A DNA stretch of 64,000 bases. Source: Hamiltosporidium tvaerminnensis FI-OER-3-3. Lineage: Eukaryota > Fungi > Microsporidia. Under the pieces are notes generated by a model. It did no database searches and was not told where the DNA came from. It worked only from the letters and a program-made list of their open reading frames with translations. Each line of letters starts with the position of its first letter. Within the stretch, counting starts at the first letter, position 1. Made by a program: the position numbers and the translations under genes. This document shows positions 1,293 through 45,557 of the stretch, in pieces. The stretch is from assembly GCA_022605425.2 (NCBI GenBank), contig CM061255.1, positions 186,001 through 250,000 on the forward strand. Reading direction: 5' to 3'.

Positions 1293-2164
1293 GATTTTAT
1301 TTGGACTTGAAAAAGGCAAATTAAAATATCAAATAAATATTAAAAAACCCAATAAACCGCTCGTTTAATCTTGAAAATAAATTCTAATTATGATTAATAT
1401 ACTTTAAAAAGTAATTAGCGAAATAATATATTAGTTGGTAATAAATTATAAAAGCAAATTGTAATAAAATTTATAATACATATGATATATTACATAGTTT
1501 CTTAACTTAATATGCTTTTTGTTAAATAAATGTTTTTTCTTTGTCAATGTATAGCTCAAAATATATTTCTTGAACAATATTTTAATTTAAGAATTTTATA
1601 TATCTTTTGTAGGTTTCATTGGTTTATTATTAAAATTTATTACTTTAAAAATATATTCGGTAAAAATATTCTATATTAAGAATATTTCATATCTTAAAAA
1701 TTTTAAATTAACTAAATGACTTGAATTTTTTAAATCGGAAATTGTAGATTTTAAAGTTATTAAACCTATTAAAGTTATTAAAATCTTATAAAAATAAAAA
1801 AAGATTTATTTTAAAAACTTATAATACCATTTGAAGGTCAATTAATTTAATAATATTATATTTTAGGAATTCCAAATAATATATATAATTGGAATCTTTC
1901 AACCATTCAATAGATTTTTTTTTATCTTTTCAGTTATCAAATCTAATTATAAATATTGTAAATAGTTTGATATTGGTACTTTTAAATTTCTATTAGAGCT
2001 TATATATCTAATTATAAATACTTTGAAACTACTGTTTAATTTAGGCTTTTCGACAAAAATGTGATTTTAAAGTTTCTCTTTATATTGTAATATCTAAGTT
2101 ATAAATAATTAAATACTTATAAGATATAAAAAACATTTAAATTATTCAATTTTTAGTGTAAAAT

Positions 2165-2850
2165 GACTATTTGTTAAAAAAGTATCTGCTTGGTTTCATT
2201 TTGGTTAAATTGTGTAAAAACTATTTTTTACATTTTTGGTGGGCAAAAACCAACATTATATGTTCGGTTACTCGATTAAAATCGTATAACGAAAAGAATA
2301 TTCGTGAAAAAAGTAAACTTTGTCTAAGAAATCTGTTTGTAGTTTTTTATGTAACCAGATTGGAAACCATAGGTAAAATTGTAGGTAATTGCCATGTAAA
2401 AGCATGAAAACGTAGTCTTGCTGACTTCGGTTTAAAATATTATGTGTCCGATGGATACAAACAATCTTTTAGAAAGCGAAGAGAGCTAAAATACAAGCTA
2501 AACTTGTTATAAGATTGAAAAGTCTAGGTAGAAGCCATGTAAGTCACTGAGATATATATAATCTTAGAGTTTATTCAGTTCAGAAAATTTAAGATTGATT
2601 AGGAGTGTATTCATGATCAAATAAGTTGGGTTTTGATGTGTTATCAAGACCAAGAATGATATAACGAACTTCGGAATAATTAGCTCGCTAATTAAATAGT
2701 TCATGTTTTTTTGATCATAAGCTTTGGAATGTAGGAATCTTAGGGGATACTGATGAATATTAGAACTTTATTTATCTATCTCAAACTTAGATTTACATCA
2801 ATAAGATGAAATCAAAATACCCAATCACTTTATCAAAGGATATGATATAT
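2165..2850 (+). ncRNA. Diverged copy A of the ~700-nt structured non-coding repeat family
   Basis: Colinear blocks shared with copies B and D: atttttggtgggcaaaaacca, gtaggtaattgccatgtaaaagcatg, gtctaggtagaagccatgtaagtc, gctttggaatgtagg, ggggatactgatgaa. Confidence 0.6.
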
Positions 2851-8492: not shown

Positions 8493-10721
8493 TTGAGGGT
8501 TCATACTTTGATTTATAAATATATTTAAATTTAATCATTTAAAAAGATTCGAAATGATTAGCCTTATTTGTTTAAATTAAATATTTGAGCTGTAAATACG
8601 TATTTGAAATTTAATTTTTCTATTTTTAAGGATTTTTTTTTCTCAATTAAAACAAATAAAAAATATTTGTGCGTTTTTTAAAAATATTCTTAAATGTGAA
8701 AATATTGGTTTTGATCATTCACGGATTTTTTATTTATTGAATATTTACATAGATATTCCAGTCATTTAGTACTTCTCTGTGATAAAGAGGTATTGAACAA
8801 CCCATAAAAAATATTTTAAGCGAATTTGACACTAAAAGACAAAAAATACTAACACCTTTGATTATATCACGTGGGATATAAAAATGAATAAGGAGTAAAA
8901 ATCTGTCCGCTATAAAAAGTAGGGAATCTGATTTGAAAACAAGCTTTTCATTTTGAAATAAGTACACCTTAAAAACCGGAAGCACTACCAAATTAAAGAA
9001 ATTTGCAAAAGATTAGATTGCAAGATTTATGGCATTGATAATTCATAAAAATATTTGATTAATTATTTTTAATATATTTTGAATGTCATTTTGTGAGTAA
9101 TAAATATTTTAAAAAGTAAAATGTTATTTTTTTTCCTAAAATTTTCTAAATTCGAAAACATCTATATTTGCTAAATTCAGAATACATAGTAAAGATTCTA
9201 TTGGTAGATTAAAATACGCTACAATTATAAATAAATGAAATATGTAAAATTATTAACTCTAGTTTGATCAAATATTTATTTGATAAATAATATAAAATAA
9301 AAAAATATTTTTGCATATTTCACATGTGATTAGACAGAAAAAGCATCTATATTTTTATTTTTTTTACTAAATCTTTCAGAAAAAGAGAATTATTTTTCAT
9401 TCATAATAAAAAAATATTTGATAAATTAAACATTTGTAATTTTTTATAATTCAAATGCAAATAAAATTTTAAACTCGTATAAGATTTTTTATTTCCAAAT
9501 CTGCTTTGTTTTTCTCAATCATTTTAGGTGTATTTTTGTTTTTTAATCCAAATATATTTTTCATTTCAGTTTGAATAAATGTTTCATGTTTTAATGATTT
9601 ATATTCTCACATCTAATTTTTGAAATATTTGACAAAATTAATTGTGAATTTAAGCTTTGTGTCTTGCCCCTTCCCTATTTGGTATTATCTAAATCTTGCT
9701 GTAAAACAAAAAGAAAAATCAAAATACATAATTTTGTTTGTGTCTAGATTGAATGCGTTTCTAAGCTAACTTCTATTTTGATATTTAAACACAAAATGAT
9801 AGCTAAAAATATTATTCGATCTATGAAAAAACCGAAGAATTCTTAATTATTATATAGAATTAACTAGTGTGCGAATCAGTCATATATTTTTTGACTTTTA
9901 TTCTGAAAAGCACAAAAATTTCATTGAAAAAAACTTTTATTATCGTGTTGACAATATCTCTGGAAATTTTAATAAACCTTATATGATATATTTCAACCGA
10001 TTTTTATTTCTTTTCTCTTCAATTTCAGATTCCCAAACAATAAAACTGAGTATGTATTCTATTAAGAAAGAAATATTATCGATTCCATTCGTCGCCTTTT
10101 GGTATTTTATTTTTGTTCTTATGAATGTTTACAAAATAAGAATGTATTTTAAATCCAAAAATACTGAAAAAGATGATAACAGACTATATAAACATGTTTG
10201 AAACCCTAATTTTGTTAGTTTTCATTTATCACCAAAAAATTTGATTTTTACAAAAACTATATAATAGACTAAAGTACCAAGTGTTTCAATGGTTCACACT
10301 TGAAATCATGCATATATTCAAGTAACACAATTCTAAACCGGCAATATCTACCTAGGTATACAAAAGATAATAAAAAATAATTTCATAATATACTGAAGTA
10401 TTCACTTTGCTTAAAGCAATATTTTCTTCTGTATATTAAAAGATTTTAAGGATATTTTTTGAAAATGAAAATATTTTAAATAAGTAATCTTTAAAAATGG
10501 ACTTTCTGTTGCTTTTTTTGTCGAGGCTCAAGATATTGCTTCAATTTGGCGTAAAACTACTAAATTCCTATAGAATCATAGGTGAATATGCAATTTTCAT
10601 ATTAAATAGCGAATTTAACTTTGAAAAAACTTCAATTTGAGATATCCACAATGTCTTTGAAATATGACCTTTTATCCTAAATTTAAATTCAATGATATCA
10701 TTTATCAATGGCATAAAAAGT

Positions 10722-11428
10722 GGAGGGAGGATATCCACATAAAAAACTTTCTGGTTAGCAATGAGTGTGCGAGGATCATTGTTTGTATTTTTGTTGAGAA
10801 TAAAACCACACTACATTTTCAGTATTCAATGAGAATTGTTTAAAAGAGTAGAGGTCTAGAAATAGCGAACTTTTTAGAAAAATTTATTGTATGTTTTTTA
10901 TATAACTAGATTGCAGATCGAAGCTGCGCATGTATGTAATCGCCATGTAAAAGCATAGAAACTTAGCCTTGCTCGCTCTGATTAGAAGACTTAACTGCAA
11001 AGAGATGTAAAAAACAAAACAGCTTAAAGCCGGGAAAGCTAAGTAGCAGGTTTTATCTATTATTATGACATTGCACCGTCTAGGTGGACTCCATGTAAAT
11101 TTCTAGAATACATTTTAGCTAAGATATTATTGGGTTCAGAATGTTTAGAGTAAGTGGGAATCCTGCATGGTCTTGGAGCAGAGTGAGCTTCGGCCTTCAA
11201 TCACACTCCATGCAACGAACATTAACGAAATTCGGGCGGCTGCTTCACCTTTAATTAGGTTCTAAACACCTGGTAGATGAAAGGCTTTGGAATGTAGGTA
11301 TTGAAGGGGATACTGATGAAGTTTTGAGCTAGCAGTTATTTATGTTAAGCCTAGAACTTCGTTAATGTCATGAAAACAAATATAACACTTGCCACTATTT
11401 TAAAAAGATGTGAAGCTTTTAAAATAAA
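10722..11428 (+). ncRNA. Full-length copy B of the ~700-nt structured non-coding repeat family
   Basis: Alignable end to end with the reverse complement of 36614-37330. No ORF in the track. Multiple stems are conserved with compensatory and G-U changes. Ends in AATAAA. Confidence 0.7.
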
Positions 11429-13994: not shown

Positions 13995-14458
13995 ATATAC
14001 GTTTTTTCGACTGATGGCTGATTTAGCAAATATTCTAGTAAAAAATTTCACCAAAAAAATCTAAGTAAATTTAAATTTCTCTATTTTCTTATTTTCCAAT
14101 TTTTATTCATTTGAATGTCAATATATTCTTAAATAATTATAAAAGTCATTTTTTCTTATAATTCATTATATTGGATTCATAATTAGAAAATAAAATTTGC
14201 TACTTTACATATATAAAGAGTTAAATCTTTATTAAATATTTTTAACTTACGATAAAGACACAATAAAAATTATTTTTAGAATAATTTTTTAGGATATTTT
14301 ATAATAAAGTTTAATAAGGAAATATAACTAAAGAGAATTCAACCCTAGGTTTATAATTTATTTTAAAATAAATATAAATCTAAGAACCAAGAATAAAAGA
14401 AGAGAAATTACATTTAAAATTAATATTTTATTTATTTCCTTTTTTATACCCCTTTTTA

Positions 14459-14686
14459 ATGATGAAGACTACACCAAAAGATTTATCAGATTTAACTAAT
14501 CAATACGTTAAAATTACAGTTACAAAAAATAGAAATTTTATTGGTAAACTGGTAGGTTATGATGTACATATGAATGTTGTTATTTCTGATGTTACTTTAC
14601 CTTCTAAAGAAACACGTAATCTATATACGGTAATACGTGGAGATACTATTGAAACTATAACTTCATTTCAGGAAGAATCAGTGTGA
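14459..14686 (+). CDS. Sm/LSm-fold protein (SmG/Lsm7-like), copy 1
   Basis: Sm1 motif RNFIGKLVGYDVHMNVVI and Sm2 motif VIRGDTI. A CCCC motif lies upstream. Confidence 0.9.
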   Translation: MMKTTPKDLSDLTNQYVKITVTKNRNFIGKLVGYDVHMNVVISDVTLPSKETRNLYTVIRGDTIETITSFQEESV

Positions 14687-16602
14687 AATTTTATAATTAA
14701 TATTCTTGAGTAATAAATTCAATCAAATGTATTTAAATGAAATACATATTGAGATTCATTTAAGTCTTACATTCGTATTCTTATATCAATATTAAGGTGT
14801 CAATAAACACCTCAAGTTTAATATTTCTCTTGTCATTTTTCTATACTCTTTTACTCTTTTGAAATACATTTTACTTGTTGCTAATCCCTTTTATTTATAT
14901 GTATTATTATTTCCAGCTTATTCTTTCTATTATTTCTCGTCCATAAATTCTTAAAATTTTGTTTGTATAAGAAAAAATCTAGATGTGTTGAATATAAACC
15001 TATGTCAAACAAAATTCATTTTGTCTTTCTATATCTTTTTGTAGAAACTTCTGTTTTTTGCATTTTTAATGCTTGTATTGAGGAAAAGTATTGAAAGCTT
15101 CTATTTATTTGCACTAAACAGCCTAAAATGTATATCATTTATATAATTCATTAATACCCCGACGACGACACATCTCGAAATGTTTGATTGGTTAAAAAAA
15201 TATAAGACACCAATAAGAGTGCTCCAATTAGTATATGTCGCTTTCAATTTGTTCATATAACTTACACAATCAATAATAGTCAGTAGAACTGAACATAAAA
15301 CAATTATAAAATTCTATTAGAGAAGAAAAATATTGAAAGAAAATTCGTAAAAGTTCTTCTAAATAGTATTATCTATTAAGAATAAACAAAAGATTTGTTT
15401 TTTTTTAAATTTTCAAACGTTTTCATTTTGAAAAAAAATTCATCACCTGTATGAGTTTTTATGAAACAGTTTAAAGCTACTTAAAAAATTGTAGGATAAG
15501 ATTGATGATTTTCCATCATTCATATGATAATTTGTTTATATTCTCTATAAAAATTGCATAAACCAATTATTTCTTGAATAGCTTCATGGAACTTTATACC
15601 TGACAACATTAAAAAATTATTAATAAAAATGACTAAGAATTTATACAATAAATAAATAAACCAGAACAGCATATTTTTTAAAAGAACGGTTTTTCAGAAT
15701 ATATAACACTTCACATGAATAAATTTATTCGAGATAAAAGATAGAATTGAATAAAATAAGCTGAACAGTAAGCAGATAAATCATAAAATAACGAGCTAAA
15801 GGTCGGCAAAATTGAAAGTAAATGAAATAGAAGAAGAGAAATATACAGGTTAAAAACAGTCTAAATTTTTATTTGACAATTTCTCAAAGACGGGTAATAA
15901 TTTAGAAATGAAAGACTAAAAAAATATACGAGAAACAGACTAGGTGAAAGTATAAGATTTTAAATAATTGTGGGATCGTGGCTGTGATATTGAAGTTTAG
16001 ATTATTTTCGTTTTTTTTTATTAATTTAAAAGAAAGTTTGTTTCTACGAGCTTAACGTCTAGTAAAATATAAAAACCGTAAATTCAACGGCATCTATACC
16101 ATTGCAGTCATACACTAAAAAAAAATCAATAAATCACCCAAAAAAATTGATTTAATATTTTGTTTTTTCCGTTGTATTAAGTGATTTTAATATTGGTTTT
16201 TCAAGTATTAAATTCGCACGTTCATATAGTTTAAATTCAAGTGTTTTTGAATAGAAATACGCAACAATGTGAATTTTAATAATAAAATACTCTTTTATTT
16301 ATTAAATTTAATATAGATTTTGGCTATGTCCGTAAAACCATTCGACACATAATATTAAAATTCTTGAAAATTTCTTATGATTATTAACTTCAAGATTTCA
16401 TCTAGAAGTATATCATGTATAAATCAACAGTTTGGAATATTTTTTTTATGTTAAGATTTTATTAAATTAAATCAACCGATTTTAATCGATAATAAATGTT
16501 TTCAAACCAGAAATGGTATATTAATGAGCAAATTTTGTTTCTTATCTATAAAAAACAACTGATTTTTTCAAATAAATATTGAATTAAAATGAGTCCTTCA
16601 TT

Positions 16603-18957: not shown

Positions 18958-19214
18958 AATTTTTCAATTGAATCTAATCAGTAGTATTTTTTATAGTTAA
19001 ATATTAACAGTAGATTGTTGTAGTCAAACAACATAATATTTTTGTTGCACTTATATTAAACCACTAATAATCTTTTATTTAAATTAAATTATAAAAATAA
19101 CATTTTTTTTGTATATCAAATTATGATTATGTTATCATGATACAATAACTCTTATTTCCTCAAAAGTTTTTTTGTAAAATAATAAATTTAAGTAAATGTT
19201 TGTATTCTTAGTCG

Positions 19215-19760
19215 AGGGCGAGGGCGAATAAATCATTCACTAGTCATCGCGTGCTATGGTTTGCTATACTCGGTATGAACTTTTTTTTGGAATTTTGGTG
19301 GATGAAAACAATTAAATGTTCGGATTTTTAATGGGAATTTATATAGCGAAAATGGCCTATGAAATGATGAAACCTATTCTACAATTTTTTTTATTGTGCA
19401 ACATGGTGGAAATATTGGTGTATTGTAGATGATTGCACGCGAAAACATAATATTACCCTTGCTTATTTCGGTTTAAAGACAGCGCGCTTGTGATATAGAA
19501 AAAAATTTATTCGTCAAAAGCCTGAAATGTTAAGAATGTATACACTTTGCTATAAAGCTGTGAATTTTAGTAAACCTCATGTAAATATCTCGATTTATCT
19601 TAGCTAGAGTTTATTCAGTTGAAAAGTGTAGACTAAGTAGCTATGCTGCTAGTCTTGAGGGATTCAGAGTGAGTTCGGACTGTAATCGTGCATCAGACGA
19701 CAAATATTGGCAAATTCTGGCAAAAATATCGCCTATAAAATGATACTGGGCATATTTTTG
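19215..19760 (+). ncRNA. Degraded copy E of the structured non-coding repeat family
   Basis: ttggaattttggtggatgaaaac...ttcgg...atggga, ccttgcttatttcggtttaaagac, catgtaaat...agagtttattcagtt and gctgctagtcttg...gagttcggact are colinear with copies A, B and D. Confidence 0.55.
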
Positions 19761-20620
19761 ATGAAACTTTGGTTTTAAGGTTTTAAAGAAAACCCAAAAA
19801 GTATTAGAGAGCAGCCATATATGCAAACTTATAACCATTTTAATATAAGAAACCAATATAGAATATTTCATTTTTCTTTAAAGATTTTATATTTATTAAA
19901 TATATGCTACTTCTTTGTAAAAATAGATAAAGTTCATAATGCACATACCGCAAAAAACCTCTATAGAACGTGGCAAAATGATAAATTTTATAGCGGCTCT
20001 CATATTGGTAGAAGTATGAATAATACTGTAAATTGAATAGAATATTGTATTGTCAATATTTTTTAAACGCGATTTTTCCCGTTCTTCCAAAGGATATTTC
20101 GTATCAATTATATCTTTAAAATCAATTCTAACATAAATTCCCTGGAAATTAACTAAAATATAAATAATAATGAATTTAAAAATTCTAAACTAACCACTGC
20201 TTGATAAATAAAGAACTGTAAACAATGGCGAAGTTTGTTAAAAGCAATATTTTACGGGATATAAGCCGATAATTGTTGTTGAGTGGCAAGAGAAAATCGC
20301 TCGGAGCACGTTCCCAAATTGCCGTTAATTTATTAAAGTCCTGACATAAATTATTGCAGTTTTAATATCGAAGCAATACTGTGACAATTATCCATGATTT
20401 TCGTGAAATTATCAAATTTCCCAATTTTATAAGTCAATATTCATAATGTAAAGAATAGACAGATTGACCGTAACATATGTCTATGTAAAGATATGTAACT
20501 AAGACACAACAATAAGTAGCTTTAGAATTTAATTGAGTTTATTTTGAATAATAATAGAAATGTGCAAAGAACGATTATTAGAATACAATTTTTAATTTGT
20601 ATTTTTTATACCCCTTTTTA

Positions 20621-20848
20621 ATGATGAAGACTACACCAAAAGATTTATCAGATTTAACTAATCAATATGTTAAAATTACAGTTACAAAAAATAGAAACTT
20701 TTTTGGTAAACTGGTAGGTTATGATGTACATATGAATGTTGTTATTTCTGATATTACTTTACCTTCTAAAGAAACATGTAATCTATATACGGTAATACGT
20801 GGAGATACTATTGAAACTATAACTTCATTTCAGGAAGAATCAGTGTGA
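20621..20848 (+). CDS. Sm/LSm-fold protein, copy 2 (recent duplicate of 14459..14686)
   Basis: Nearly identical to copy 1, with three amino-acid changes (I>F, V>I, R>C). ATG is at 20621 after CCCC; the ORF-track start at 20597 is a TTG. Confidence 0.85.
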   Translation: MMKTTPKDLSDLTNQYVKITVTKNRNFFGKLVGYDVHMNVVISDITLPSKETCNLYTVIRGDTIETITSFQEESV

Positions 20849-21829
20849 AATTTTATAATTAATATTCTTGAGTAATAAATTCAATCAAATGTATTTAAAT
20901 GAAATACATATTGAGATTCATTTAAGTCTTACATTCGTATTCTTATATAAGTTCTTGTATTTCATATCATTTTTAAGTTTTGAATCTAGCTTGTTTCTTT
21001 GAATAGTTTTTTTTGTTTATATTCGTTCTGACTTCGATTTTATTTTTATAATTATAAATATTTTTCTGTTATACATTCTCACATAATCAAAGAATATAAC
21101 AATCTTAGGTTTATATTTTAAAATCAGAAGCAAAAAGGTAAAAAAAAGTTTATAAAGTTTTGTTTTAATTTTTGAAACTAAAATATACGCAGTACGATTT
21201 ACTTGCAATTTCGCTGAGTCATATTTATATATTTTAGTTGGAAAAACTCTTTAATTAGTAAATTAAGTATTATTACAAAATACCATAAAATGTATCTTTA
21301 GGACCTTCATGATCTTATACAAATAAAGGTATATTTTACGGTTTATAGTGCTTAAAATGACAGTCGAAACAATTTCCTTTGATCGATAAATAAAATTATA
21401 GTCGAAAAAAACCATTCAATAAATATAAAAAAACATCTTTTATATTCTTTAAAAGTTTAATATAAAAAAATACAAATATTATCAAAAACACTAAAAATTT
21501 AAGAACCGTTTTTAGTATTCTGTAAGATTTTAATACAAAGAAATACAACTAACACAAAAAACGACATAAACATTACGATTAACCTTAAAATTTATATATA
21601 CTCAATATTTTTATTAAAAATGTGGTAAAAAAAATCAAATATTTTTTACACTTCACCAACCAATTAATAATATATTTCAATATCTTTAAAAGAGATATAA
21701 ATAATTTAAAGACAAATTAAAATTCCGAATATACAAATACGTCTTTTTTCTGAAATCATTTTGATATTTAGAAGTCAAAGAACATAATATTATTCTAGTT
21801 TATTTTAAACAAATAGCTAAACATATATA

Positions 21830-23438: not shown

Positions 23439-24170
23439 ATGAGTAACATATTAGACTTCGGTCCAATCTACACTTCAACCGGTACAATTCTACAAATAAA
23501 TTACGCACAAAAATGTGCAGATAATGGTAGCACATGCATAGCAATAAAAACAAAGCAAGGTATAGTTCTAGCTGTAGAAAAACCCATAACTTCTCCACTC
23601 TACACGAACAAAGAAAACAGTCGTATTAAAAAATTTACAGACACTTGTTACACCACCTACTCTGGTCTTCTCACCGATGGTTTTTGTATTTACAATTTAG
23701 TAAAAAAAGAATGTTATTCGTACATAGAAGATGTTGAGAAAGACATATCACCAGCGATGGTTAAAAAACTGTTAAGTTCGTATTTATCTTTCTTTACTGT
23801 ATATATGGGTTGTAGACCATCAGGATGTAATTTTATTACTGTTATTGTGTATAATAACGAACCATTTATATTAGGCAGTCAATCTTCTTCACTTACTTCT
23901 TATTATAAAGCACATGCTATTGGTAAAGGTTCAGCCAGATGTAAAACTGAACTTGAAAAACTTGATTTTCAAAATATGTCTGTTTCTCAGATGATAGAAC
24001 ATGCAGTAAGAATTATGTATAAGTCTTATGATCCTCTTAAAGATAAAGAATTTGATATTGAAATTATCTATGCAGAAGAAAAAGATAAATATACTTTTAA
24101 AGAAGTGGATGGTAATACACTCAGTGAAATTGTGGAAAAGTATAAAAATCTAAGTGTAGACGATGATTAA
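23439..24170 (+). CDS. PRE10: 20S proteasome subunit alpha-7 (PSMA3/Pre10)
   Basis: TGTILQINYAQKCADNGSTCIAIKTKQGIVLAVEK, YMGCRPSG and AIGKGSARCKTELEKL are typical of alpha7. The start was reassigned to aCCCCtcaATG at 23439. Confidence 0.9.
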   Translation: MSNILDFGPIYTSTGTILQINYAQKCADNGSTCIAIKTKQGIVLAVEKPITSPLYTNKENSRIKKFTDTCYTTYSGLLTDGFCIYNLVKKECYSYIEDVEKDISPAMVKKLLSSYLSFFTVYMGCRPSGCNFITVIVYNNEPFILGSQSSSLTSYYKAHAIGKGSARCKTELEKLDFQNMSVSQMIEHAVRIMYKSYDPLKDKEFDIEIIYAEEKDKYTFKEVDGNTLSEIVEKYKNLSVDDD

Positions 24171-24177
24171 AGAAATT

Positions 24178-24430
24178 TGATGTTTTTGTATTTTTCTATT
24201 CTTCTTTTGTATTTATTTCTATTCTTCTTTTGTATTTTTTTCTATTTTCTTTTCTTTTTTGTATTCTCTTTCTTTTGTAGTTTTCTATTCTTTTTCTTAA
24301 TCTCTTTCTATTCTTTTTCTTTTCTTTTTTTATTCTCTTTCTTTTGTATTTTTCTCTTTCTTTTGTATTTTCTATTCTATTGTTTTTTTATTAATTATTT
24401 TTTCTTATTCTCTTTCTTTATAGTTAAATA
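24178..24430. repeat. T/C-rich low-complexity degenerate repeat (ttttgtattttctattctc) 3' of PRE10
   Basis: Repeated ttttgtatt and ttctattc words. These produce the spurious Phe-rich ORF 24177..24473. Confidence 0.75.
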
Positions 24431-26333
24431 TTTTGTAATTTTTTGTAAATCTAACCTTTGTTTTAATTATTAAATATTTTTTCTTTAAGTCGTTATATAA
24501 TGACATTTTTTTGCAAATATAACCTTGGAAAAAGCAAAATTAATTTTTTAAATAAAATTATTAAATGCCTCTGGTTTTTCTCTTAAGTCATTTTCTTGTA
24601 TCTTTTCAGTTTTTCATATATTTTTAATTTTAATTATTTTTTACTTTTATGAAATAAATTAACTGGAAAACAAAAGAAATGAAAAAAAGAATAAAATTGG
24701 CTATAAAATATGAAACCCGTATTTGTTTATAAACGAGACAATTATATTTAATTTGTTAACTATAAAATAATCTATTATGATGATAATTTTAAAATATAAT
24801 TTTATACTTTTTGTGAAGTTCTATAAGTAATAAACATTCTTCTTAACTTCGTTGAATATAATAACAAAAACATTCTTTATGAAACCAAACCTTTTTTTTG
24901 TTCTCTACCGTTATATCTTTTTTGTAGCAATACACTAAAAAAGTTAAATTTTTGATTTAAGGTATTTAAACTACAATATTTTTTCGAAGAATTTATTTTT
25001 TTTAATCGATATAGTTTGAAAATATTCGATTCAATTAAATATATCTCACTCGTATCTAATTGATAGTTATTGCATGGCGATTCAATTATAGATACAAGTT
25101 TTATTTATTCTCTTTTTTTCGGTGTTTGAATAGAATGATTCATAAATTGTATATTTTTAGTATCTACTGATATTCTATCTATACTATCTTAAGATATCTT
25201 TCTGTGAGAATAATATATTATTTGGTGCGTATCTGATTATATCTAAGTAAATCTATTAAAATATAAATCGATCTTTATTTTCAGGCAGATATACTGACAT
25301 TTATTTCAAGCTTACGAACAATTTTAAGATTGTATCATAGAACTTATGTCTTGATATATAGGTTGTATTACTTTTTGGTAATAAAATAAATGATTTATCA
25401 GCACATATTTGATTTGTTAATTTTTTTAAAAAGTCTTTTCCATAGTCTATTTGTAAGATAAAGTGTGACACTTTTAGGAAAATAAGATTTACCAGCGAGT
25501 AGTGATAGTTTTCGCCGGTTTGCCTCGCTAATCTATTAAAAAATTGTGTGTATGTATCCAGAATGTGACGTATTAATACAAGGTCATTATTATGTGTTGC
25601 ATATTTCTGAATTTCTTAATCTCATTTCGAAACTTCTCATCTATGATCTGTAGTCATCGCTTTAATTGCATGATTAAGCTTTAAAAGCTATTATATAGTC
25701 AATTTGGGAAATTTTTAAAAATATTTTGTTTCGTTCTTGATACAATCGCTGTATTTTATGTTAATTTCTTGATACATTGCTTCCATTGTGATCTGAAATA
25801 AAGATGTAAATAAAAGCTTTTTATTTTTCGATATTATTATCATAATTACTTCTTTGTTTGTGTTGTCAACATCTGTTGTATAACATCACCATTTTCAGTA
25901 ATTAAATCGTCTATCCATTTGAAACCTATCTTTCCTTATTAATATTTATCATGGAAGATACATTATCCAAAATTTTAAAGTATCGTTTGCCTTTTTTTTC
26001 CATATTTGTCACAATTCATTTCATTTTGATAAAAACGGTTATCTTTCAAAAATACAATATTTTCTTCTCAGAATTTGAAAAGAAATAATTTTAAACATAT
26101 ATCATAAGAACGTAAACCAAAACACAAAAATTTTATATTTAATTTAGCTGTGTAATAAACTATAAACTCGAATTTAATTTATATTAAATCTATCCATCAA
26201 GTTATATTTAAATACATTTTAAATATCCAATTACCTTACCTCCTTATCTTCTATCTCTTATCATACACATCATACACAGTAATATACTATTACATCACAT
26301 CCTTTTTATATACCTCTCTTACTCTATACACAC

Positions 26334-26809: not shown

Positions 26810-26950
26810 CATCTTATTCGGTTATCTTATTTACATATATTATTCTAATCATCTTACTTAAATATATTATTCTAATTATCTTATTTACATATATTATTCT
26901 GATTATCTTATTTACATATATTATTTTGACTATATTATTCTAATTATCTG
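26810..26950. repeat. ~27-bp tandem repeat (ttatcttatttacatatattattctaa), 4-5 copies
   Basis: The unit is directly visible, and the array ends where copy C of the structured element begins. Confidence 0.8.
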
Positions 26951-27237
26951 TAGAGTAAGAAGTCTTGCTGCATAGGTTTGAAAAAGCCAATAGTATGTCT
27001 CGGCCTTCGATCACACTCCATGCAACGGACATTAACGAACTACGGGCAACTGCCTCACCTAGTAATTAGGTTCTACACACCTGGTAGATGAAAATTTAAG
27101 TAACATAGGTATCAAAGAAGTACTGATGAAGTGTTAAACAATAGTTATTTATGTTAAACCTAGAACTGGGTTAATGCAATGAAAACAAATATAACACTTG
27201 CCACTATTTTAAAAAAGATGTGATACTTTTAAATAAA
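26951..27237 (+). ncRNA. 5'-truncated copy C (3' ~290 nt) of the structured non-coding repeat family
   Basis: tcggccttcgatcacactccatgcaacggacattaacgaac, aattaggttctacacacctggtagatgaaa and tgaaaacaaatataacacttgccactattttaaaaa are nearly identical to copy B. Confidence 0.7.
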
Positions 27238-27728
27238 CTTTGAGGATATTAATATTCTTAAAAGTTTTATAAGATTAAATTATAAAATCAAACAGTACTG
27301 TTATATATCAGTATGATTTTAACAAAATGGTTGAATAGATGTAATTATGTTAAAAGAAAGTTATAATTTAAAGAAAGTGTTAAAAACGGATTTTTAAAGT
27401 CATACTAATATTATTTATAATTATTTTTGTTTAGTGTTCAATGGAATATAAAATATCCATTTATAAATAAATTTGACTTGCTTAAATAATATGAAAATGG
27501 AAATTATTAAATTATCTTATTTTTTGATTAATACAAGTAAAAATTATAAATTATTTATGTTTCTTATACTTTTTATATGTAGAGATAATGAAGTGAGTTC
27601 TTAGTATTTTTATTACGATTCATATTTTAGAATTATTATACTTTAAATTAATATTAAAGAGATTTATTTAAACGAATAAAATTTAAATTTCTGTTAAATA
27701 TTAAATGTGTATTGTAACGTAAATGATA

Positions 27729-28046: not shown

Positions 28047-30149
28047 ATGAATATCAAAGATTTATCGTTACATAAGCCAATAAAAAGAGCTTTGAAAGAA
28101 AATAAAATAGAAAACTTAACAGAAATACAGCAACTTACTATTCCAGCAGCCATGAGTGGAAAAGACATTTTGGGTATTTCAAAGACAGGATCTGGTAAGA
28201 CTTTATGTTTTGTAATACCGTTATTACAAAGATTAGTAGATAATAAATGGTGTATGGAGGATGGACTTGGTGGTTTAATAATAACACCTACACGTGAATT
28301 AGCGGTACAAATTTTTAATGTTTTAAAAAAAATAGGAAAAAACTGTTATTTAAGTTGTGGTCTTATAATAGGAGGAATAGAAAGTAAAGGAGAGAAAGAA
28401 GTTATCGGAAAGATGAATATATTAGTGTGTACTCCTGGTAGGTTATTACATCATATTTTGGAAACTCCATATTTTGATATTTCCAATGTACAAATATTGG
28501 TAATTGATGAAACAGATAAATTATTAGAAATGGGGTTTAAAAAAGATATTTTGGAAATAATGTCATATTTACCGGTAAAAAGACAAAATATATTTTTAAG
28601 TGCTACGCCTAAATCTATAAATCAAAAGAATTTATTTATTGATTTCGATTCAATAGAAATATTTTCTGCGTATAAAAATGAAAATACAAATGAAAATAAA
28701 AAAGTGAAAAATAATTTGGAGCATTTTTTTTATGTTTTGAGTATTTGTGACAAAGTGGAATATTTATATACGATTTTGAAAAATAATAATTCCAAAAAAA
28801 TTATTGTTTTCTTTTCGACTTGTAAAGAAGCAAAATTTTATTTCTTAGTTTTTTCTAAGTTAAAAATGCGATGTAAGTTTAATTTATTGAATGGTTCTAT
28901 CAAACAAGAAAAGAGAATGGAAGTATATGATAGTTTTAAGAGAGAAAAGAGCGGTATTTTGTTTTGTACTGATGTTGTGTCTAGAGGGTTAGATTTTCCT
29001 GGTGTGGATATTGTTATACAATATGATTGCCCTGAATGTGTAGAGACGTATGTTCATAGAGCAGGTAGGACGGGTAGATTTGATAAAGAAGGAATTTCTA
29101 TTTTGTTTCTGTTAAAAAGTGAGAAAGGTATAATTCAGGACATAAATAAAGGGAAATGGAAAGAGGGAAGTAAGGAGAGAGGAACTGAAGGGAAAGAAGG
29201 AAATGTAAGTGAAAGGAGTGTAATTGAAGGTAAAAAAGGGAGTGTGAGTGGATGTAAAGAAGGAAATGTAAGTGAAAGGAGTGTAAGTGAAGATAGAAAA
29301 GGGAGTGTGAGTGGATGTAAAGAAGGAAATGTAAGTGAAAGGAGTGTAATTGAAGGTAAAAAAGGGAGTGTGAGTGAAGGTAAAGAAGGAAATGTAGGTG
29401 AAAGGAGTGTAAGTGAAGGTAAAAAAGGGAGTGTGAGTGAAGGTAAAAAAGGGAGTTTGAGTGAAGGTAAAGAAGTCAAAAGTAAGAAAAACAAGGAAGA
29501 TTCCAACGACAAAATAATTTACGAAGGTAAAAAATTAGAAATAAAAAAAATTCAAAACCAAATAAAATCCTTGATTGCAGAACACGAAGAAATAAAAATA
29601 TTTGCTGAAAAATACATAAAAACTTTTTATAGATTTATTGAAATGAACAGTAAAAAGTATTTAGAAGGGACCAAAGAACAGATATGTAAGTTAAAAGAAT
29701 ATTTTGGATTTGAAGATTTTTCAGATGAAAGTGAAGAAGAATTTGAAAATATAAGAAATACGAAAGAGAGTGATAGCGAAAGAGAAGATAATAAGGGAGA
29801 TAGAGAAGGTAGCAAAGAAAAGCATAAAGGAAATATAATTAGACAAGATGATAAGGAAAATGAGGAAAGAGAAAATAGTAAGAAAAATTATAAAAGAGAT
29901 ATGGAAAGAGAAAATATTTATAAAAGAAATAAAAAATCTCAAATTATTAATAATTCTAAAAGAAATGAAGAATTTAAAAATATAGAATATTTAAATTCGG
30001 ATAGAAAGATTAACAAGAAAAGACTTGTTGGTAAAGTAAAAAATACAAAAATAATTTTTGATGAAAATGGGAATGAAGAAGAGTTTTATAGAGATGAAAT
30101 CACTAAAAAAGAAATAGAAGAAGGATTGGGAAAAAAGGGGTTTAAATAG
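28047..30149 (+). CDS. DBP4: DEAD-box RNA helicase Dbp4/DDX10 (SSU processome)
   Basis: Q motif LTEIQ, GSGKT, the W..EDGLGGLIITPTRELA signature of Dbp4/DDX10, TPGRLL, DETD, SAT, SRGLDF and HRAGRTGR. Confidence 0.88.
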   Translation: MNIKDLSLHKPIKRALKENKIENLTEIQQLTIPAAMSGKDILGISKTGSGKTLCFVIPLLQRLVDNKWCMEDGLGGLIITPTRELAVQIFNVLKKIGKNCYLSCGLIIGGIESKGEKEVIGKMNILVCTPGRLLHHILETPYFDISNVQILVIDETDKLLEMGFKKDILEIMSYLPVKRQNIFLSATPKSINQKNLFIDFDSIEIFSAYKNENTNENKKVKNNLEHFFYVLSICDKVEYLYTILKNNNSKKIIVFFSTCKEAKFYFLVFSKLKMRCKFNLLNGSIKQEKRMEVYDSFKREKSGILFCTDVVSRGLDFPGVDIVIQYDCPECVETYVHRAGRTGRFDKEGISILFLLKSEKGIIQDINKGKWKEGSKERGTEGKEGNVSERSVIEGKKGSVSGCKEGNVSERSVSEDRKGSVSGCKEGNVSERSVIEGKKGSVSEGKEGNVGERSVSEGKKGSVSEGKKGSLSEGKEVKSKKNKEDSNDKIIYEGKKLEIKKIQNQIKSLIAEHEEIKIFAEKYIKTFYRFIEMNSKKYLEGTKEQICKLKEYFGFEDFSDESEEEFENIRNTKESDSEREDNKGDREGSKEKHKGNIIRQDDKENEERENSKKNYKRDMERENIYKRNKKSQIINNSKRNEEFKNIEYLNSDRKINKKRLVGKVKNTKIIFDENGNEEEFYRDEITKKEIEEGLGKKGFK
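29185..29476 (+). repeat. Coding tandem repeat (EGKEGNVSERSV[I/S]EGKKGSVS; ~60-bp unit) within DBP4
   Basis: Repeated aaagaaggaaatgtaagtgaaaggagtgtaa and gaaggtaaaaaagggagtgtgagtg. Confidence 0.9.
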
Positions 30150-35014: not shown

Positions 35015-36571
35015 ATGCATTTATTTTTATTTCTCTTTTTTCTGATTTCTTTGTGTTTTGGAAGTATGAGTGAAGATCCTAAAACAGATAACGAAGCATG
35101 TCATTCTAAAAGAGATACAAGTGATTCTGGTAAAAAGAATAAATCGGAATACAATATAAGTAAAGACTTTCACCTTATCGTTATGACAGATTATCAAGAT
35201 GCTATTGATACTATTTCATCAAAAGTCCCCGGATTAAAAGATATCTTACGATCTTATTTGGAAAAAATGGAAGATTTGATTCTGGAATGTATAAACAAAA
35301 CTCTGAATAAACAGATAGAAATTCTCAAAAAACCAGATAATCCGAATATTTTTAAATCAAAAATATACGAAACATTTTATTTAGATTTTATTGAAAATTT
35401 GATATTTGATCTCTCAAGTTTGACAGAAAAAAGTTTTTATTCAAAAGAGGATTTATATGATTTTAAGAAAACCGTTGGTGGAGTATTTAAACAGATAAAA
35501 CATAAAATCCATTGCGAAATGCCATATGATATTGCAAGAATTAAAGCTGCAAATAAAGCACATGTTTATAACGAAACCAAAAAAGAAGCACTGAAACTTG
35601 TCTCAAATATTGGTAAAAACAATGATACAAAAAAATTTTTAATTGAAAAATCATTTGAAATTTTTAAATCTAGTCTTTATTTGCTGAATAAAGAAATTTT
35701 GGGATCTTTATTTTTCAAATCGAAAATCAATGATGATTTTATAAATAAAGAAGTAGAAAATAACAAATTTCTCAAGAACATTCGTACGATGCATGAAAAA
35801 AATGGTTGGCCAATACCAAATTATTACACGATGTCTCCTTTACAAAAAAACAAAGAAGTTTTTGATCTTTTTTTTGAAATGCTTTTTAAATTTATGACAG
35901 AATATTATTTCAATAAAATGTTCCCAGATATTTTTACACATAAAAGATTATTTCTTTTCTGGGCCCATAATGGAAGCGAACCGGGGGTACCCTTATCTAT
36001 AAAAACCCGTGATAATAGTTTTCTGCCGGTTGTCTTTTATGAGCGGGAACGTGAATATTTAGATTTGGCTTTTAATGTTTCCTTTTGTAGAAATTTATAT
36101 TTATACTTTTACTTTAGAATTGAAGAGTGGTTATTTATATTTATCGAGCAACTTCTTTTTTGTGTTGGAAAAGAAAAATTTGTTGAAATTATGAAAATGG
36201 ATCTTCCAGCAGATATAGTAGAAAGAAGAAAACAGACGAATACTGTTTTTGAAAAAATATATAAGGATAGAAAAATATTTTGCGGAGAAATTAAAAGTTT
36301 CTTAATAAAATTTATGATCTTTTTTAGATACTATACGTATGTCTCTTTTTGTATCTATAAAGTGCAAGATATTGATCTGAGTGATATTTCTAATAAATTT
36401 TTCAAAAAGCATCTAAAAAATAAATTCAATTCTGAACATGAAGAAGTGCGTTTTATTAGTAAAATGAAGGAAATTGTTTTGATTTATTTTATGAATTTCT
36501 TTGAATTAAAAGTAGAAGAATGCTTTGGAGACGATTGTGTCAAGGAAAAAATGGTGTATTGGAATCATTAA
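35015..36571 (+). CDS. Lineage-specific secreted protein family member (ends WNH)
   Basis: 518-aa ORF with CCCC-ATG and signal peptide MHLFLFLFFLISLCFG. A paralogue lies at 43987..45557. Confidence 0.85.
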   Translation: MHLFLFLFFLISLCFGSMSEDPKTDNEACHSKRDTSDSGKKNKSEYNISKDFHLIVMTDYQDAIDTISSKVPGLKDILRSYLEKMEDLILECINKTLNKQIEILKKPDNPNIFKSKIYETFYLDFIENLIFDLSSLTEKSFYSKEDLYDFKKTVGGVFKQIKHKIHCEMPYDIARIKAANKAHVYNETKKEALKLVSNIGKNNDTKKFLIEKSFEIFKSSLYLLNKEILGSLFFKSKINDDFINKEVENNKFLKNIRTMHEKNGWPIPNYYTMSPLQKNKEVFDLFFEMLFKFMTEYYFNKMFPDIFTHKRLFLFWAHNGSEPGVPLSIKTRDNSFLPVVFYEREREYLDLAFNVSFCRNLYLYFYFRIEEWLFIFIEQLLFCVGKEKFVEIMKMDLPADIVERRKQTNTVFEKIYKDRKIFCGEIKSFLIKFMIFFRYYTYVSFCIYKVQDIDLSDISNKFFKKHLKNKFNSEHEEVRFISKMKEIVLIYFMNFFELKVEECFGDDCVKEKMVYWNH

Positions 36572-36613
36572 AGATTTTATTTTATTGAATATCCTTGTTT
36601 TAATATAAATAAC

Positions 36614-37330
36614 TTTATTTAAAAATAGCATATCTTTGTAAAGCAGTGGCAAGTGTTATATTTGTTTTCATGTCATTAACGCAGTTCTAGTTAACATAAA
36701 TAACTGCTATCCAACACTCCATTAGTACCACCTGTGATACTTACGTCCCAAAGATTTTCATCTACCTGGTATTTAGAACCTAATTAATAGGCGAGGCGGT
36801 TACCTGGAGTTCGTTAATGTCCGTTGCATGGAGTGTGATCGAAGGTCGAAGCGCACCCTGGGCTTCGCCAAGACTATGCAGCAAGACCACCCATCCACAC
36901 TTTATAACTCAATAAACTTATAGATAATATCTATTTCAGAGACTTACATGGAGTGCACCTAGACAGTGCAATGTCATAGTAAAAGGTATAACCTGCTACT
37001 TAGCTTTCCCGGCTTCAAAGGGTTTTGTTTTTTATATCTCCCGACGCTAAGTCTTCTAACCCGAGTGAGCAAGGCTAGATTCTCATGATTTTATATAGAA
37101 ATTACCTACATTTTCAGCCGTGGGCTGCAATCATGCTATATAAAAAACAACAAATAAATTTGTACGAAAAGTTTCTCCATTTCTTAGACTTCTCCTCCTC
37201 GTAAGAACTCCCATGGAACAACCGAAGATGTAGTGTGGTTTCTTCCCACCAAAAATCCAAACAAAGATCCTCACACCGGTTTCACACACTCATTCAAAGT
37301 AGAAAGTTTTTTATGTGGTTATCCTCCATC
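36614..37330 (-). ncRNA. Full-length copy D of the structured non-coding repeat family
   Basis: The reverse complement is colinear with 10722-11428. Identical blocks include aagccgggaaagctaagtagcaggtt and catgaaaacaaatataacacttgccact. Confidence 0.7.
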
Positions 37331-40300
37331 TACCATTATTATAAATAATATTTATATTATTTCTAAGTATACACAATACACTGTTTCATAGACTTCTTCT
37401 ACCAGGAATGTCATTTTGCAATCCTACAAGCATGGTGCGGAATCAATCATTTTAATATCAAAGACGTGTTGCGAAGCAATCTTCATACAGATCGGAGCCA
37501 CCTTACAATGAGAAGTTGGATTGTATTCTAAATCTCGATCCTTTCAAAAACTTAGCACGCTACGAATTAGAAGAAGAATATATCAGAAAGACAAATGATG
37601 TAAACTAGCAACCGCCTTTGTATTCCTGTTCGGTATTTATTTATCAAAAAGTACAGTATATAACAAACACCATTAGACAGTTATTTAATAAAGATAAACG
37701 TAATCTTGTAATATGAAAAAGGAAAGGTGGTTTGAAGTTTAAAGCTTTTAAAAAATGTAGTGAATACAAAGAGTTTGAAATAAATTGATTGAAACCTAGT
37801 AAATATACAGATTTAAGTAGCTTGAGTTTGTTACAAACCTGAACGCGTTATAAAGCGGCAAAATTTTGCTAAGACGAAGCAAAAGGGAAATGAACCTTCG
37901 ATTTAAATGAAATAACATCTAAAAGCGGAATCTCATATGATAATACTTAACAAAGCTCTTCGCGTAAAGTTCGTAGGCAGGAAATATCTGCGCTTTTAAA
38001 TAAAGATTCGCAAGATTTTTTTTGCTAAGTTTAATCTAAACAGAAGCGCAAAAATGCCATGTCTGAGCTTTAGTTAGGAATAATTTGTCTTTGGATGTTT
38101 ACACCAAAATAAACGACCAAATTATGCTATTAAGAAAAAATTCGGAGAAAAATCTATATTTTAGCTATTTCGATTTTAATTTAATTAGAATCAAAAAAGT
38201 TTAAATACAAATATGCACCGTAATCAAATGGAATAGTAAGCTTTTCGCGTACTATGGTGAAGAAGAATACTGAAATAGGCGCTTAAAATGAATTTTTGAT
38301 GCTGTTTATAGAGGTTTATGACAAGGGAAACGTCTTCTTCACTTTAAGTGTTTATATCTATATTGGTTGGCTTCCTATCTAAACTCTTAAGATGATGATA
38401 TTTGAAATTTAATTTATTAGAAATTTTGCAATTATTTTTTCGAATTTTGAAATTTATGGGAATATACGCATCAACATGATTGCATTTACTAAGAGTGAAT
38501 GAAATGAATCCAAAAGAAAATACATAAAGAAATTCTGCCTATAGGCTAATCACAATTTTGTAAAACCTCTATTTATACTCACAAATTATTTTACGATGGT
38601 TGCTCAACTTGAAATAAAATACTAGGTTGTTGGCTAAAAAAGCATCAAATGCCGTATAAGGCGGACTTCTGCGAAATTGCAAGTCTTGTCGGAAGTGACT
38701 CATAATATAGACTATGGAAACATTTTTTGGCAGCGTGATTGGTGTACCGAAGCGTATGATGCAATAAATCATAGAGATCAAACTCAGAAAATCAAAAAAT
38801 TTAAGCTTAGTAATATTCCTTGAGTGTTTAAGTTAATCAAATAAAAATGGGCAATAAATATAATAGGGGCTTTAAAAAATTATACGAGAGAATATTCAAG
38901 GCTAAGTTTAAAAATAGATAGGTTTTCCTCCATTATTTATTTGTATTATGTATAGATATGTTGGTCCAGAGACTTATATAAAAATCCGACAAAGGTTACA
39001 GAACAACGATTAAGGTTATACAGAAAAAGCACATTTTGTACAGCAACTATCTCAGGCTTCTTATAGTCTGGGCTAATGATCTAGCTTTTACGGTTATAAA
39101 GTACAATATTTCTTGTTAAAAACAAGTCTCGTAATTAACAAATGAAAATCTGCTATATATGCATACGTATTATCAATAAACTGCTATTTTTCTAGAAAGA
39201 GGATGTGTTACAAATATTTCAAACCACCCAGAGATAGCAAATAAAACTTTACACTTGGTTCATTGATAGAATTAAAAGAAGTGTTCATCCTGAGAGTTGA
39301 AAATTTTCCTCACACTGAATTAAATGCAAGAAATTTATTTGAGGATTACAATGAATATGTAAGCTGGCAGCTAACTATCATTCGGAGTGTTTCGATCTGA
39401 AAAGTGATTTATCGTGTCAAATAATATCATAAGTGGAGTGTTGTAAAAAACAAGATAAATTGCAAACAAAAATATAAATAGCATTTAGTTATAACCAGAT
39501 CTAAACGTGAAGGGAATTAAAAGGTATTAACATTAGAACAGAAATGTGTTTTGCAGCTATTTTATTGTTACGAAGAAAATATAGAAGTATTCAAAACAAG
39601 AATTGCAATTCATAAAGAAAAAATAATAATAAAACGCAATAGCTCTAATAAACGACGTAGCTCAAATAAAAATACATTCGAAATAGAAAATAAAAGAGAA
39701 ATTTTAAAAAAAAAAGTTAAAAAATTTTTCTGAAAATGTAAGAGAAGAAATTTATTGATAGATTTAAAATATTAAGAATTATGAGTATGTATGCGCAAAA
39801 TTTTTCTTGAAAAGGCTCAATAATGGAATTCTTGAGTTATCAAGGGAAGGCTTCTACTGTTATATTTAGAAAAGACATGTACTTGTGTATAGAAAGTACC
39901 CGACCGAATGAAACTCTAAAGAATGATAATTTGTTTTGTAACAGGGTATAATTTCCAAGACTCAACTACCAGAGAAGCTGCTTGGTATTCTATTATTAAC
40001 ATATACTTCTTTTTAATGATATTTTTTAAGTCTTTTGCGAATTACGAGTTAGTCAGTTTAAGGAACACTTGAAACATTGAATTATATAAATGTAGATATT
40101 AGATAAAAAAAGTCTTCAAAATTTAAAAGAATTGACCAGACATGCCGAATTTATTCATAAATGCTACTTGTAATCCAAAAATCTCCAAATTTTGCATGTA
40201 AAAATGTAGGCAAAATAAACTTTATTTTTCTAAGCAATACAGTATTTATTTTGAATAAGAAATTAAATTTAATAATATAAATTCAAGGCAGAAACACTTT

Positions 40301-42885: not shown

Positions 42886-43844
<959 letters not shown>

Positions 43845-43986: not shown

Positions 43987-45557
43987 ATACATATATTCAT
44001 ACATTTCCTTCTTCTGACTTTTTTGTGTTTTGGAAGTACTAGTAAAAGTCCATTGAACCCAAAAACCGAAAGAAGAACATACGATTCTAGAAGCCTTGCA
44101 AGTGGTTCTCAGACAAAGAAAGTTTATGAATCAAATCCAGATAATATTCATCACCTTATTATTATGAATAGCTACCAAGATGTTATTGATAGTGTCTCTT
44201 TTAGAGTCCCTTATTTAAAAAAATTCATTCATTTTTATTTAAGAAAAATTGAACGTTTAATTCCAGAATATTTAAAAAAATCGTTGGATAAGCAAATAGA
44301 AACTCTTAAAAAACGCCGAATAAATTCGAATTTTACCAAATTTACAACTTATGAAGTTATTTTTTTGCAATTGATACAAAATTTTATTTCTGATCTATTA
44401 AGCAATTCTATGGAAGACGATGCATCAGAAAGAGGTTTTGATCAATATAATGAGAGGATTAGAAATGTACTAAAATCCGAGGTTGATGCTATGAATTTAG
44501 AAATAATATCTGATCTCGAAAAAGTGCAAAACAATAGAAATACTGAAGGTTATAAGAATACTAAAAAAGATGCTATAAAGTTTGTATCGGATCTTCAAGA
44601 CAATCATATTTTCAAAAAAATATTCATACAAAGAATTTTTAAGATTTTAGAAGAAGGTTTTAAGAGTTTTTGGATAGAAAACTTTGAATCTTTAAAGTTC
44701 GAATCAGAAAATAAATCTGATGTTTACAACATGGGTTTACAAAATAATACATTTTTTAATACTATCCTCAAAGATTTCAAGGAAAATAGTTGGCCATTGC
44801 CCTATTATTACACCAGGAAATCTTCACATGAGGATAAGCCCTATCTTTTACTTTTTTTGGAGCTCTTTTTACTTATATGCTGGAATCCCATTTCAATAAA
44901 ATGTTTCCAAAGATTTTTAAAAACGAAAGAATATTTCTTCATTTTATCCATAATGAAAGGCAACCAATTGTTCCATTGGATATTAAAATCAGAGAGAATA
45001 GTTTTATTGCCCCAATATATACAAAAGAAGACCTGGAATTCATCTGTAATACCTTTTTTCATCACAGCCTTAGAACATTATATTTGTCTTTTTACTTCAG
45101 AATCGAAAATTGGTTGTTTATATTTGGGGAACAACTTCTTTTGACGCTCGGAAAAGAAGATTTTTTTGCTGCTATGAGAAACAATATTTCCGATAGAAAA
45201 GTGATACGAAAAAGGCAAACGACTGCTTTTTTTAAAAATGTATTTGCGAAAAAAAGAATATTTTGTGAGGAAATTGGTACTTTCTTTTCAACACTTAAGT
45301 CTCAAATCATAGAATCACCGACATATGCATATTTTTATATTTATAAAGTTCAAGACATTGACATAAGTAATATACCTAAAGAAATCTTTAAGAAATATCG
45401 GATAGAAAATTTTGTTTCAAATTGTGCCGGAAAACATCCGTTTGCTAGTTCGGAAAAAAATCTATTCATTTATTTCATGGATTTCCTTGAAACTACAATA
45501 GAGGAACAGTTAACGGGTGAGCCTATCAAGGAAAAAAAAGTGGTTTGGAATCATTAA
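43987..45557 (+). pseudogene. Paralogue of 35015..36571 with an ATG>ATA start change and a -1 frameshift near 44866-44870
   Basis: CCC-ATA-CAT-ATA... gives IHIFIHFLLLTFLCFGS, in frame and aligned to MHLFLFLFFLISLCFGS. ORFs 44023..45144 and 44877..45557 join to give WPLPYYY...FNKMFP...FYFRIENWLFIFGEQLL...YKVQDID...WNH*. Confidence 0.8.

Follow-up and report, generated by a model that had tools for sequence, protein, structure and literature searches.

The repeated element at positions 10,720 to 11,428 of the window, by which we mean the whole 64,000-nucleotide stretch of the Hamiltosporidium tvaerminnensis genome analyzed here, is most likely a copy of a non-coding, non-autonomous non-LTR retroposon of ~730 nt that can be called SINE-like in the loose sense in which the SINEs of Entamoeba are so called, a reading to which we give a probability of about 85%. 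The initial annotation had left two readings of the element, a family of large structured RNAs with covarying helices and an RNA-mobilized element, and the second of these is borne out by the presence of target-site duplications of variable length, 5' truncations that spare the 3' part, duplications at the 5' junction, about 600 near-identical copies with sharp ends and no coding capacity, and an empty-site allele. Neutral, AT-biased decay of the inserted copies accounts for what had been taken as covariation, as described below.

A profile search (nhmmer) combined with alignments recovered five copies from the window. Copy B (10,720 to 11,428, plus strand; consensus positions 2-729, E = 5e-211) is a full-length but old copy that has a GC content of 36% and is 84% identical to the consensus of the young copies. 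Its 5' head lies at 10,720 to 10,824 on the plus strand, where a head profile matches with an E-value of 5e-18 and which aligns with heads of several families, and its 3' terminus at 11,420 to 11,428, also on the plus strand, reads TAAAATAAA, a decayed version of the family's TTAAATAAA(G) that has an A[A/U]UAAA-type hexamer. The target-site duplication of copy B has been reduced to a decayed remnant of 7-9 nt. Copy D (36,612 to 37,333, minus strand; consensus positions 3-731) is likewise full-length and old, is 88% identical to the consensus, was also picked up through the inverted repeats I1-I6, and begins 41 nt past the stop codon of the open reading frame at 35,015-36,571, while copy C (26,949 to 27,238, plus strand; consensus positions 440-730) is truncated at the 5' side with its 3' end kept and has the direct repeats D11 and D13 in common with copy B. 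Copies A (about 2,153 to 2,850, plus strand; consensus positions 23-717; near-full-length, GC 29%) and E (about 19,212 to 19,894, plus strand; consensus positions 72-720) are very old, being 62% and 60% identical to the consensus, respectively. They can be regarded as old singletons because the genome search gave no relative of either that is closer than the young family, at ~71%. The colinear copies A to E had thus been recognized correctly, except that copy E does not end at 19,760 but runs on to about 19,894. The sixth reported copy, F (52,038 to 52,152, plus strand), proved by blastn and alignments to be a head of ~110 nt only (head-profile match E = 1e-29), followed by another element whose body is related to the sequence at L045:8783-9000. 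The blocks described as near-invariant are indeed conserved in B, C, D, and the young copies (84-88% alike), whereas the older copies A, E, L028b, and L016b do not show them.

The surroundings of these copies are very AT-rich, with a GC content of 13-32% per 2 kb, and long uninterrupted open reading frames encode a DEAD-box helicase, a dynamin, a proteasome subunit, and a ubiquilin-like protein. The helicase frame (28,047-30,149) contains internal tandem repeats of 24/63 nt at 29,106-29,483, and the 2-kb bin holding them has a strong GC skew (0.5). Two further frames, 35,015-36,571 and 44,023-45,144, gave no Pfam matches; located about 9 kb from each other, they have blocks that are 71-76% identical at the DNA level and probably represent diverged paralogues. 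The window also contains a direct repeat of 347 nt (14,440-14,786 and 20,602-20,948; 98.6% identity, 6.2 kb apart), which has a weaker relative at L025:3045-3255 and may represent another repeat family, as well as about 1.1 kb of near-pure T runs with short A interruptions at 42,750-43,830 (GC 13%) and a smaller, similar tract of T runs and A runs at 24,130-24,580.

The family extends over the whole genome of 21,638,905 bases in 17 contigs. The published assembly of H. tvaerminnensis, a parasite of Daphnia magna, is described as 21.64 Mb in 17 contigs with an N50 of 1.44 Mb, and interspersed repeats make up 39.56% of it, of which 25.45% are classed as "other" (PMC10542269). When copy B was used as the query, 1126 first-look candidates were obtained, and candidate matches number roughly 1,000 in all; the 39 matches that were scored among the 1126, with the locus of B itself excluded, are full-length and ~83% identical to B, two of them stopping at query position 700 of 707. 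By comparison, 29 young loci showed a mutual identity of 98-99% over ~730 nt, and this identity falls to background exactly at each end of the element; copy B is, therefore, an aged representative of a family in which a large number of young copies also exist. Counting of 25-mer patterns with up to 2 mismatches gave 579 heads and 604 3' blocks in the genome, against 0 for the reversed-pattern controls, so the young copies number about 600. The matches are equally frequent on the two strands, and the insertions are dispersed over all contigs in intergenic DNA. A downstream ORF start was found within 40 nt of only 2 of the 29 young copies, which gives no support to a preference of the family for positions 30-38 nt upstream of start codons. 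Two exact-pattern scans of metagenomes, with head and body motifs, returned 0 loci. The element begins with GTGGAGG and ends with AAATAAAG. As had been noted from the window alone, no inverted termini, TG..CA ends, or poly(A) tail were found, and no shared reading frame exists; the longest frame in a young copy amounts to 77 aa and opens with GTG.

The earlier statement that the element has no target-site duplication does not hold for the young copies. Exact duplications of 10-19 bp (mean 13.8) flank 25 of the 29, compared with 8 of 87 shifted controls, one repeat adjoining the 5' GTGGAGGGAGG and the other following the 3' TTTTAAATAAAG; a tail of 0-3 nt or a T-rich stretch of 9-20 nt lies between the 3' end and the duplication. 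In the young copies at L003:1477-1498 and L015:2229-2250, the first 20-21 nt of the element are duplicated at the 5' junction, which looks like template jumping or switching as reverse transcription ends. Truncated copies that keep the 3' part were found by nhmmer not only in the window (copy C) but also at L016:2895-2985 (consensus positions 633-725) and L010:28-111 (629-717). Because the 3' end is the part retained, the orientation of copy B must be that of the RNA sense strand; this orientation had been proposed before on account of G-U pairs, and the choice was correct, but its proper basis is the 3'-retaining truncations. The most direct sign of mobility was obtained at locus L008, where two public DNA runs of other samples (X17 and X20) each have a contig that joins position 1481 to position 2235; the 753 bp between are left out, and 16 nt fit both sides. 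The analysis of young copies had found a target-site duplication of 16 bp at this very locus, and the agreement between overlap and duplication identifies the contigs as a precise empty site. The insertion is, therefore, polymorphic and the family has been mobile recently.

A non-autonomous element of this kind depends on the enzymes of a LINE, and the genome offers many: at least 466 candidate matches to RVT_1 were found, many of them in intact open reading frames of ~1255 aa, and they belong to at least three LINE families. The dominant LINE (L043:3401-7221, minus strand, and also L044-L048) is 3.8 kb long, its copies being 98.6-99.4% alike, and has one open reading frame of 1253 aa. It has essentially no 5' UTR, the frame beginning 0-5 nt past the 5' target-site duplication. 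RVT_1 occupies residues 504-743 of the protein, whose C-terminal part contains a C-x2-C-x12-H-x4-C knuckle, CQHCGKSGKTVDHLATRC, followed by RPDIFILD...LIEVGIT (RPD...D...E), and Exo_endo_phos, the N-terminal AP endonuclease, gave no match in the protein. Judged from this motif order of reverse transcriptase, CCHC, and a PD-(D/E)xK-type motif, the dominant LINE is of the restriction-like-endonuclease type. When compared with solved proteins, its reverse transcriptase matched human L1 ORF2p (E = 6e-18) and R2 (E = 4e-13). Decayed fragments of a restriction-like-endonuclease LINE are present in the window itself, at 38,563-39,616 (plus strand) and 46,799-47,181 (minus strand), where tblastn aligned the L043 protein at 29-52% amino acid identity.

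Six copies of the dominant LINE end in TTATTAAATAAA, of which the terminal part is TTAAATAAA, followed by a tail of 1-5 nt, and of four copies examined for duplications, three had clear ones of 14-16 bp. The sharing of the 3'-terminal TTAAATAAA, together with similar short tails and a similar duplication length, makes this LINE the probable driver of the element, and we favor this assignment with reasonable, though not high, confidence. The 9 terminal nucleotides that the two have in common are not significant as a local alignment, and a comparison of the element with the LINEs of the genome gave no 3' homology longer than 9-10 nt. The same retroposon might instead be driven by another LINE, either the family of 850-940-aa proteins that lacks CCHC (L031/L034/L036 type) or a two-ORF family (L050 type), since at least three LINE families are available. 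The 3' region of L036-type copies has TTAAATAAAG, in which the last G of the element is present as well, and in the L050-type LINE a 15-nt match to the element occurs within the 300 nt that follow the stop codon (p = 0.02). However, the sequence that follows TTAAATAAAG in L036-type copies is common to several loci, and the motif is thus not the terminus of that LINE. Only in the restriction-like-endonuclease LINE does the motif form a true 3' end with a short variable tail and a 14-16-bp duplication (in three of four copies), and this LINE outnumbers the other families and has many frames of ~1255 aa that are intact. A different driver, therefore, seems unlikely. Copies of the 850-915-aa LINE family (L036, L037, L038, L040, and L042) lie ~50-190 kb from the ends of contigs C13, C16, C2, C14, and C3, and they are followed by identical sequence past their apparent 3' end, as if they were parts of a larger duplicated subtelomeric unit.

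If the dominant LINE is indeed responsible, amplification of the element can be envisaged as follows. A few source copies would be transcribed in the orientation of copy B, from the 5' GTGGAGGGAGG to the 3' TTAAATAAAG. The LINE reverse transcriptase and endonuclease would then nick AT-rich intergenic DNA and copy the RNA from its 3' end by target-primed reverse transcription, and the insertion would leave a duplication of 10-19 bp, in some cases with an extra tail of 9-20 nt, and occasionally a copy that is cut short at its 5' side or has that end duplicated. Once inserted, the copies are free of selection and decay under the strong GC-to-AT mutation bias of the genome.

How the source copies are transcribed can be approached from the two ends of the element. 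The 5' head, a module of ~110 nt with the conserved words GATAACCACA, AAAAC, TCTG, and AAAACCACA, recurs on at least four other non-coding elements with differing bodies. Such elements are found at 52,038-52,260 of the window, L045:8783-9000, L043:2170-2280, and L014:862-974, and those in the window and at L045 have a further ~110 nt in common past the head before they diverge. RNAalifold found 0 pairs across the heads of these families, which indicates that the conservation of the head lies in the sequence itself; it is compatible with a promoter or a protein-binding module, and we regard the shared head as a putative promoter or recognition module. The head matched no Rfam family and no tRNA, and it was absent from the LINE copies among 20 loci around reverse-transcriptase matches. 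At the other end, the terminal AAUAAA may be a cleavage/polyadenylation signal. In mRNAs of H. tvaerminnensis, A[A/U]UAAA is located ~20 nt upstream of the 3' ends (PMC10542269). The AAUAAA end, followed by tails that reach 20 nt, would fit a cleavage signal with short read-through into the flank of the source copy, pointing to RNA polymerase II rather than polymerase III. The indexed RNA runs gave no match to the element. Two raw RNA runs labeled as the presumed host, X24 and X21, yielded 0 reads, which does not count against transcription because H. tvaerminnensis may not be present in them.

Alternatively, the element could belong to the classical Pol III SINEs, its head coming from a small cellular RNA of microsporidia that is too diverged to be recognized or is undescribed. 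The modular arrangement, in which a ~110-nt head is carried by several families with different bodies, resembles the head-body-tail organization of SINEs, and T-rich sequence often follows the 3' end. Several observations weigh against this origin: ARAGORN found no tRNA in the window, no A-box or B-box was seen by eye, the head forms no conserved helix, and the AAUAAA end with its tails of up to 20 nt is like the Pol II 3' ends of H. tvaerminnensis. The initial annotation had been unable to match the element to known RNA classes, and the same was found here, as the window gave no Rfam match at the gathering score and a young copy gave none that was credible at E-values up to 10. A Pol III origin of the element is accordingly considered improbable. 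As a more specific and tentative proposal, which we think more likely wrong than right, the head could be a portable promoter or recruitment signal that is swapped among several non-autonomous families, all of them driven by the one restriction-like-endonuclease LINE and ending in a Pol II-type AAUAAA. If true, no Pol III gene would have gone into the making of this SINE system, and none would have been characterized in Microsporidia before it.

The reading that had been placed first in the initial annotation, namely that the copies are functional paralogues of a ~700-nt RNA gene whose helices are kept by selection rather than dead insertions, was examined by folding energy, consensus folding, covariation, and pair retention, and none of these supported it. 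Local hairpins do exist, and the element, with a GC content of 42%, is far above the 24% of the genome. However, the folding energy is ordinary: against dinucleotide shuffles, one young copy gave MFE z-scores of -0.73 for the plus strand and -1.49 for the minus strand, and the 728-nt consensus gave -1.47 and -0.96 for the two strands with 100 shuffles. The covariation tests were based on 12 diverged copies, and RNAalifold placed only 4 pairs at -0.98 kcal/mol in their bodies. For the 108 confident pairs of a young copy, 77.5% of cells were paired, compared with 76.1% with shuffled partners, and changes on both sides were seen in 22 pairs against 18.3 in the shuffles, 81 of 500 of which reached 22; when the partners were slid by one column (-1), the number rose to 25. 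The stems listed in the initial annotation (42 pairs) gave at first sight a better result, with 12 both-sided pairs against 8.3 (18/500 shuffles) and a covariation score of 0.148 against 0.123 (9/500), but, according to the documentation of the tool, shuffle counts of this kind arise in 5-25% of unconstrained alignments. Sliding the partners by two columns (-2) yielded 13 both-sided pairs and a score of 0.137. In copy E, 5 of 6 both-sided changes stay paired. Thus, the listed stems are real as local hairpins, but their compensatory changes do not exceed those of the slid-partner controls or the expectation for independent substitution.

Retention of base pairs in the old copies was compared with the expectation that both sides mutate independently according to each copy's own substitution matrix. 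The pairs of the young copy gave z-scores of observed minus expected retention between -1.3 and +1.5, and the listed stems gave about +2.2 only in copies B and D, from which the stems had been defined; in copies outside that definition the values were -0.06 and +0.33. Base-pair retention in the old copies therefore equals that of neutral, AT-biased, independent decay. The same decay is visible in the composition and divergence of the family: the old copies form a star pattern, in which the young consensus is the nearest sequence to each of them, ahead of every other old copy, their GC content drops with age from 42% to 29-32%, and the per-site frequency of strong-to-weak changes is higher than that of weak-to-strong changes by a factor of roughly 3-7 (median about 3.6). 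Because the GC content of the young consensus (42%) is well above that of the genome (24%), the element is full of G-C hairpins, and independent decay of the same hairpins in many copies leads to many G-U pairs and occasional double changes. Taken with the duplications, truncations, and empty site that mark the copies as insertions, these results make a family of structured RNA genes very unlikely. Shared derived states among the old copies are modestly above chance, and columns 481-532 show an apparent switch from U-G to A-U in the source lineage; a slight constraint on the source RNA, beyond what 12 sequences can show, is possible, and this RNA may have a few selected helices, such as the pair at columns 481-532. 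In more general terms, a young repeat that is rich in GC looks like a structured RNA when it sits in an AT-rich genome, both in its G-C hairpins and in the apparent "covariation" among its decaying copies.

An LTR element, solo LTR, MITE, or Helitron is ruled out by the ends of the element and by duplications that vary from 10 to 19 bp, and a decayed protein-coding gene by the absence of any open reading frame longer than 77 aa in a young copy.

In the strict sense, a SINE has an internal Pol III promoter in a 5' head that comes from tRNA, 7SL, 5S, or snRNA, a 3' tail that is either homologous to the 3' end of a partner LINE or A-rich, and source copies that are transcribed in the sense direction. 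The element does not fall under this definition because it has no Pol III-type head; its 3' end has 9 nt, TTAAATAAA, in common with the restriction-like-endonuclease LINE and lacks an A-rich tail, whereas stringent SINE/LINE pairs share tens of bases at their 3' ends. A length of 730 nt is also long for a SINE, at or above the usual size limit. The element is nevertheless like classical SINEs such as Alu, B2, and the CORE-SINEs in being non-autonomous, LINE-dependent, and flanked by target-site duplications, in its modular organization of head, body, and tail, and in its star-like spread from few source genes. It is unlike them in the missing Pol III-type head, in the missing A-rich or simple-repeat tail, in its size, and in its AAUAAA end, which suggests a Pol II-type 3' end.

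The nearest known system appears to be that of the EhLINE/EhSINE pairs of Entamoeba histolytica (EhLINE1-3 and EhSINE1-3). The EhSINEs are non-coding elements of 0.5-0.7 kb that occur in several hundred copies in the AT-rich genome of a parasite, have neither a tRNA, 7SL, or 5S head nor poly(A), make duplications of variable length in AT-rich DNA, and are polymorphic in insertion between isolates. The EhLINEs encode a C-terminal CCHC motif and a restriction-like endonuclease, have two ORFs, and share a long 3' stretch of tens of bases with the EhSINEs. The family described here resembles EhSINE1-3 as a non-coding retroposon of several hundred copies in a small, AT-rich parasite genome that lacks poly(A) as well as any head of the tRNA, 7SL, or 5S kind. 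It also resembles the Entamoeba pairs in the variable duplications in AT-rich DNA, in the coexistence with a LINE of the CCHC and restriction-like-endonuclease type, and in the insertion polymorphism between isolates. On the other hand, the Hamiltosporidium element and LINE share 9 terminal bases only, rather than tens of bases, and the LINE has a single ORF of 1253 aa without a 5' UTR, rather than two ORFs. The host is a microsporidian and not an amoebozoan, and, unlike in Entamoeba, the 5' head is common to several non-autonomous families.

The probable driver can also be compared with R2-type and other restriction-like-endonuclease LINEs and their non-autonomous derivatives, with which it shares the order of reverse transcriptase, then CCHC and a PD-(D/E)xK-like motif, and with which the 5'-junction duplications of the element agree in fitting template jumping. 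Unlike the rDNA-specific R2-type elements, however, the Hamiltosporidium insertions are dispersed in intergenic DNA, and the reverse transcriptase of the driver matches human L1 ORF2p slightly better than R2.

Our literature search found no description of a SINE-type retroposon in Microsporidia. The family is previously undescribed, while SINE-like retroposons as a kind are already known. Its recognition names and explains part of the "other" repeats that make up 25% of the genome (PMC10542269), and the young copies, about 600 of 0.73 kb each, are estimated to account for about 2% of the genome. The recently active, polymorphic insertions provide ready population-genetic markers for this parasite of Daphnia, and the family bears on the expansion of genomes in vertically transmitted microsporidia.
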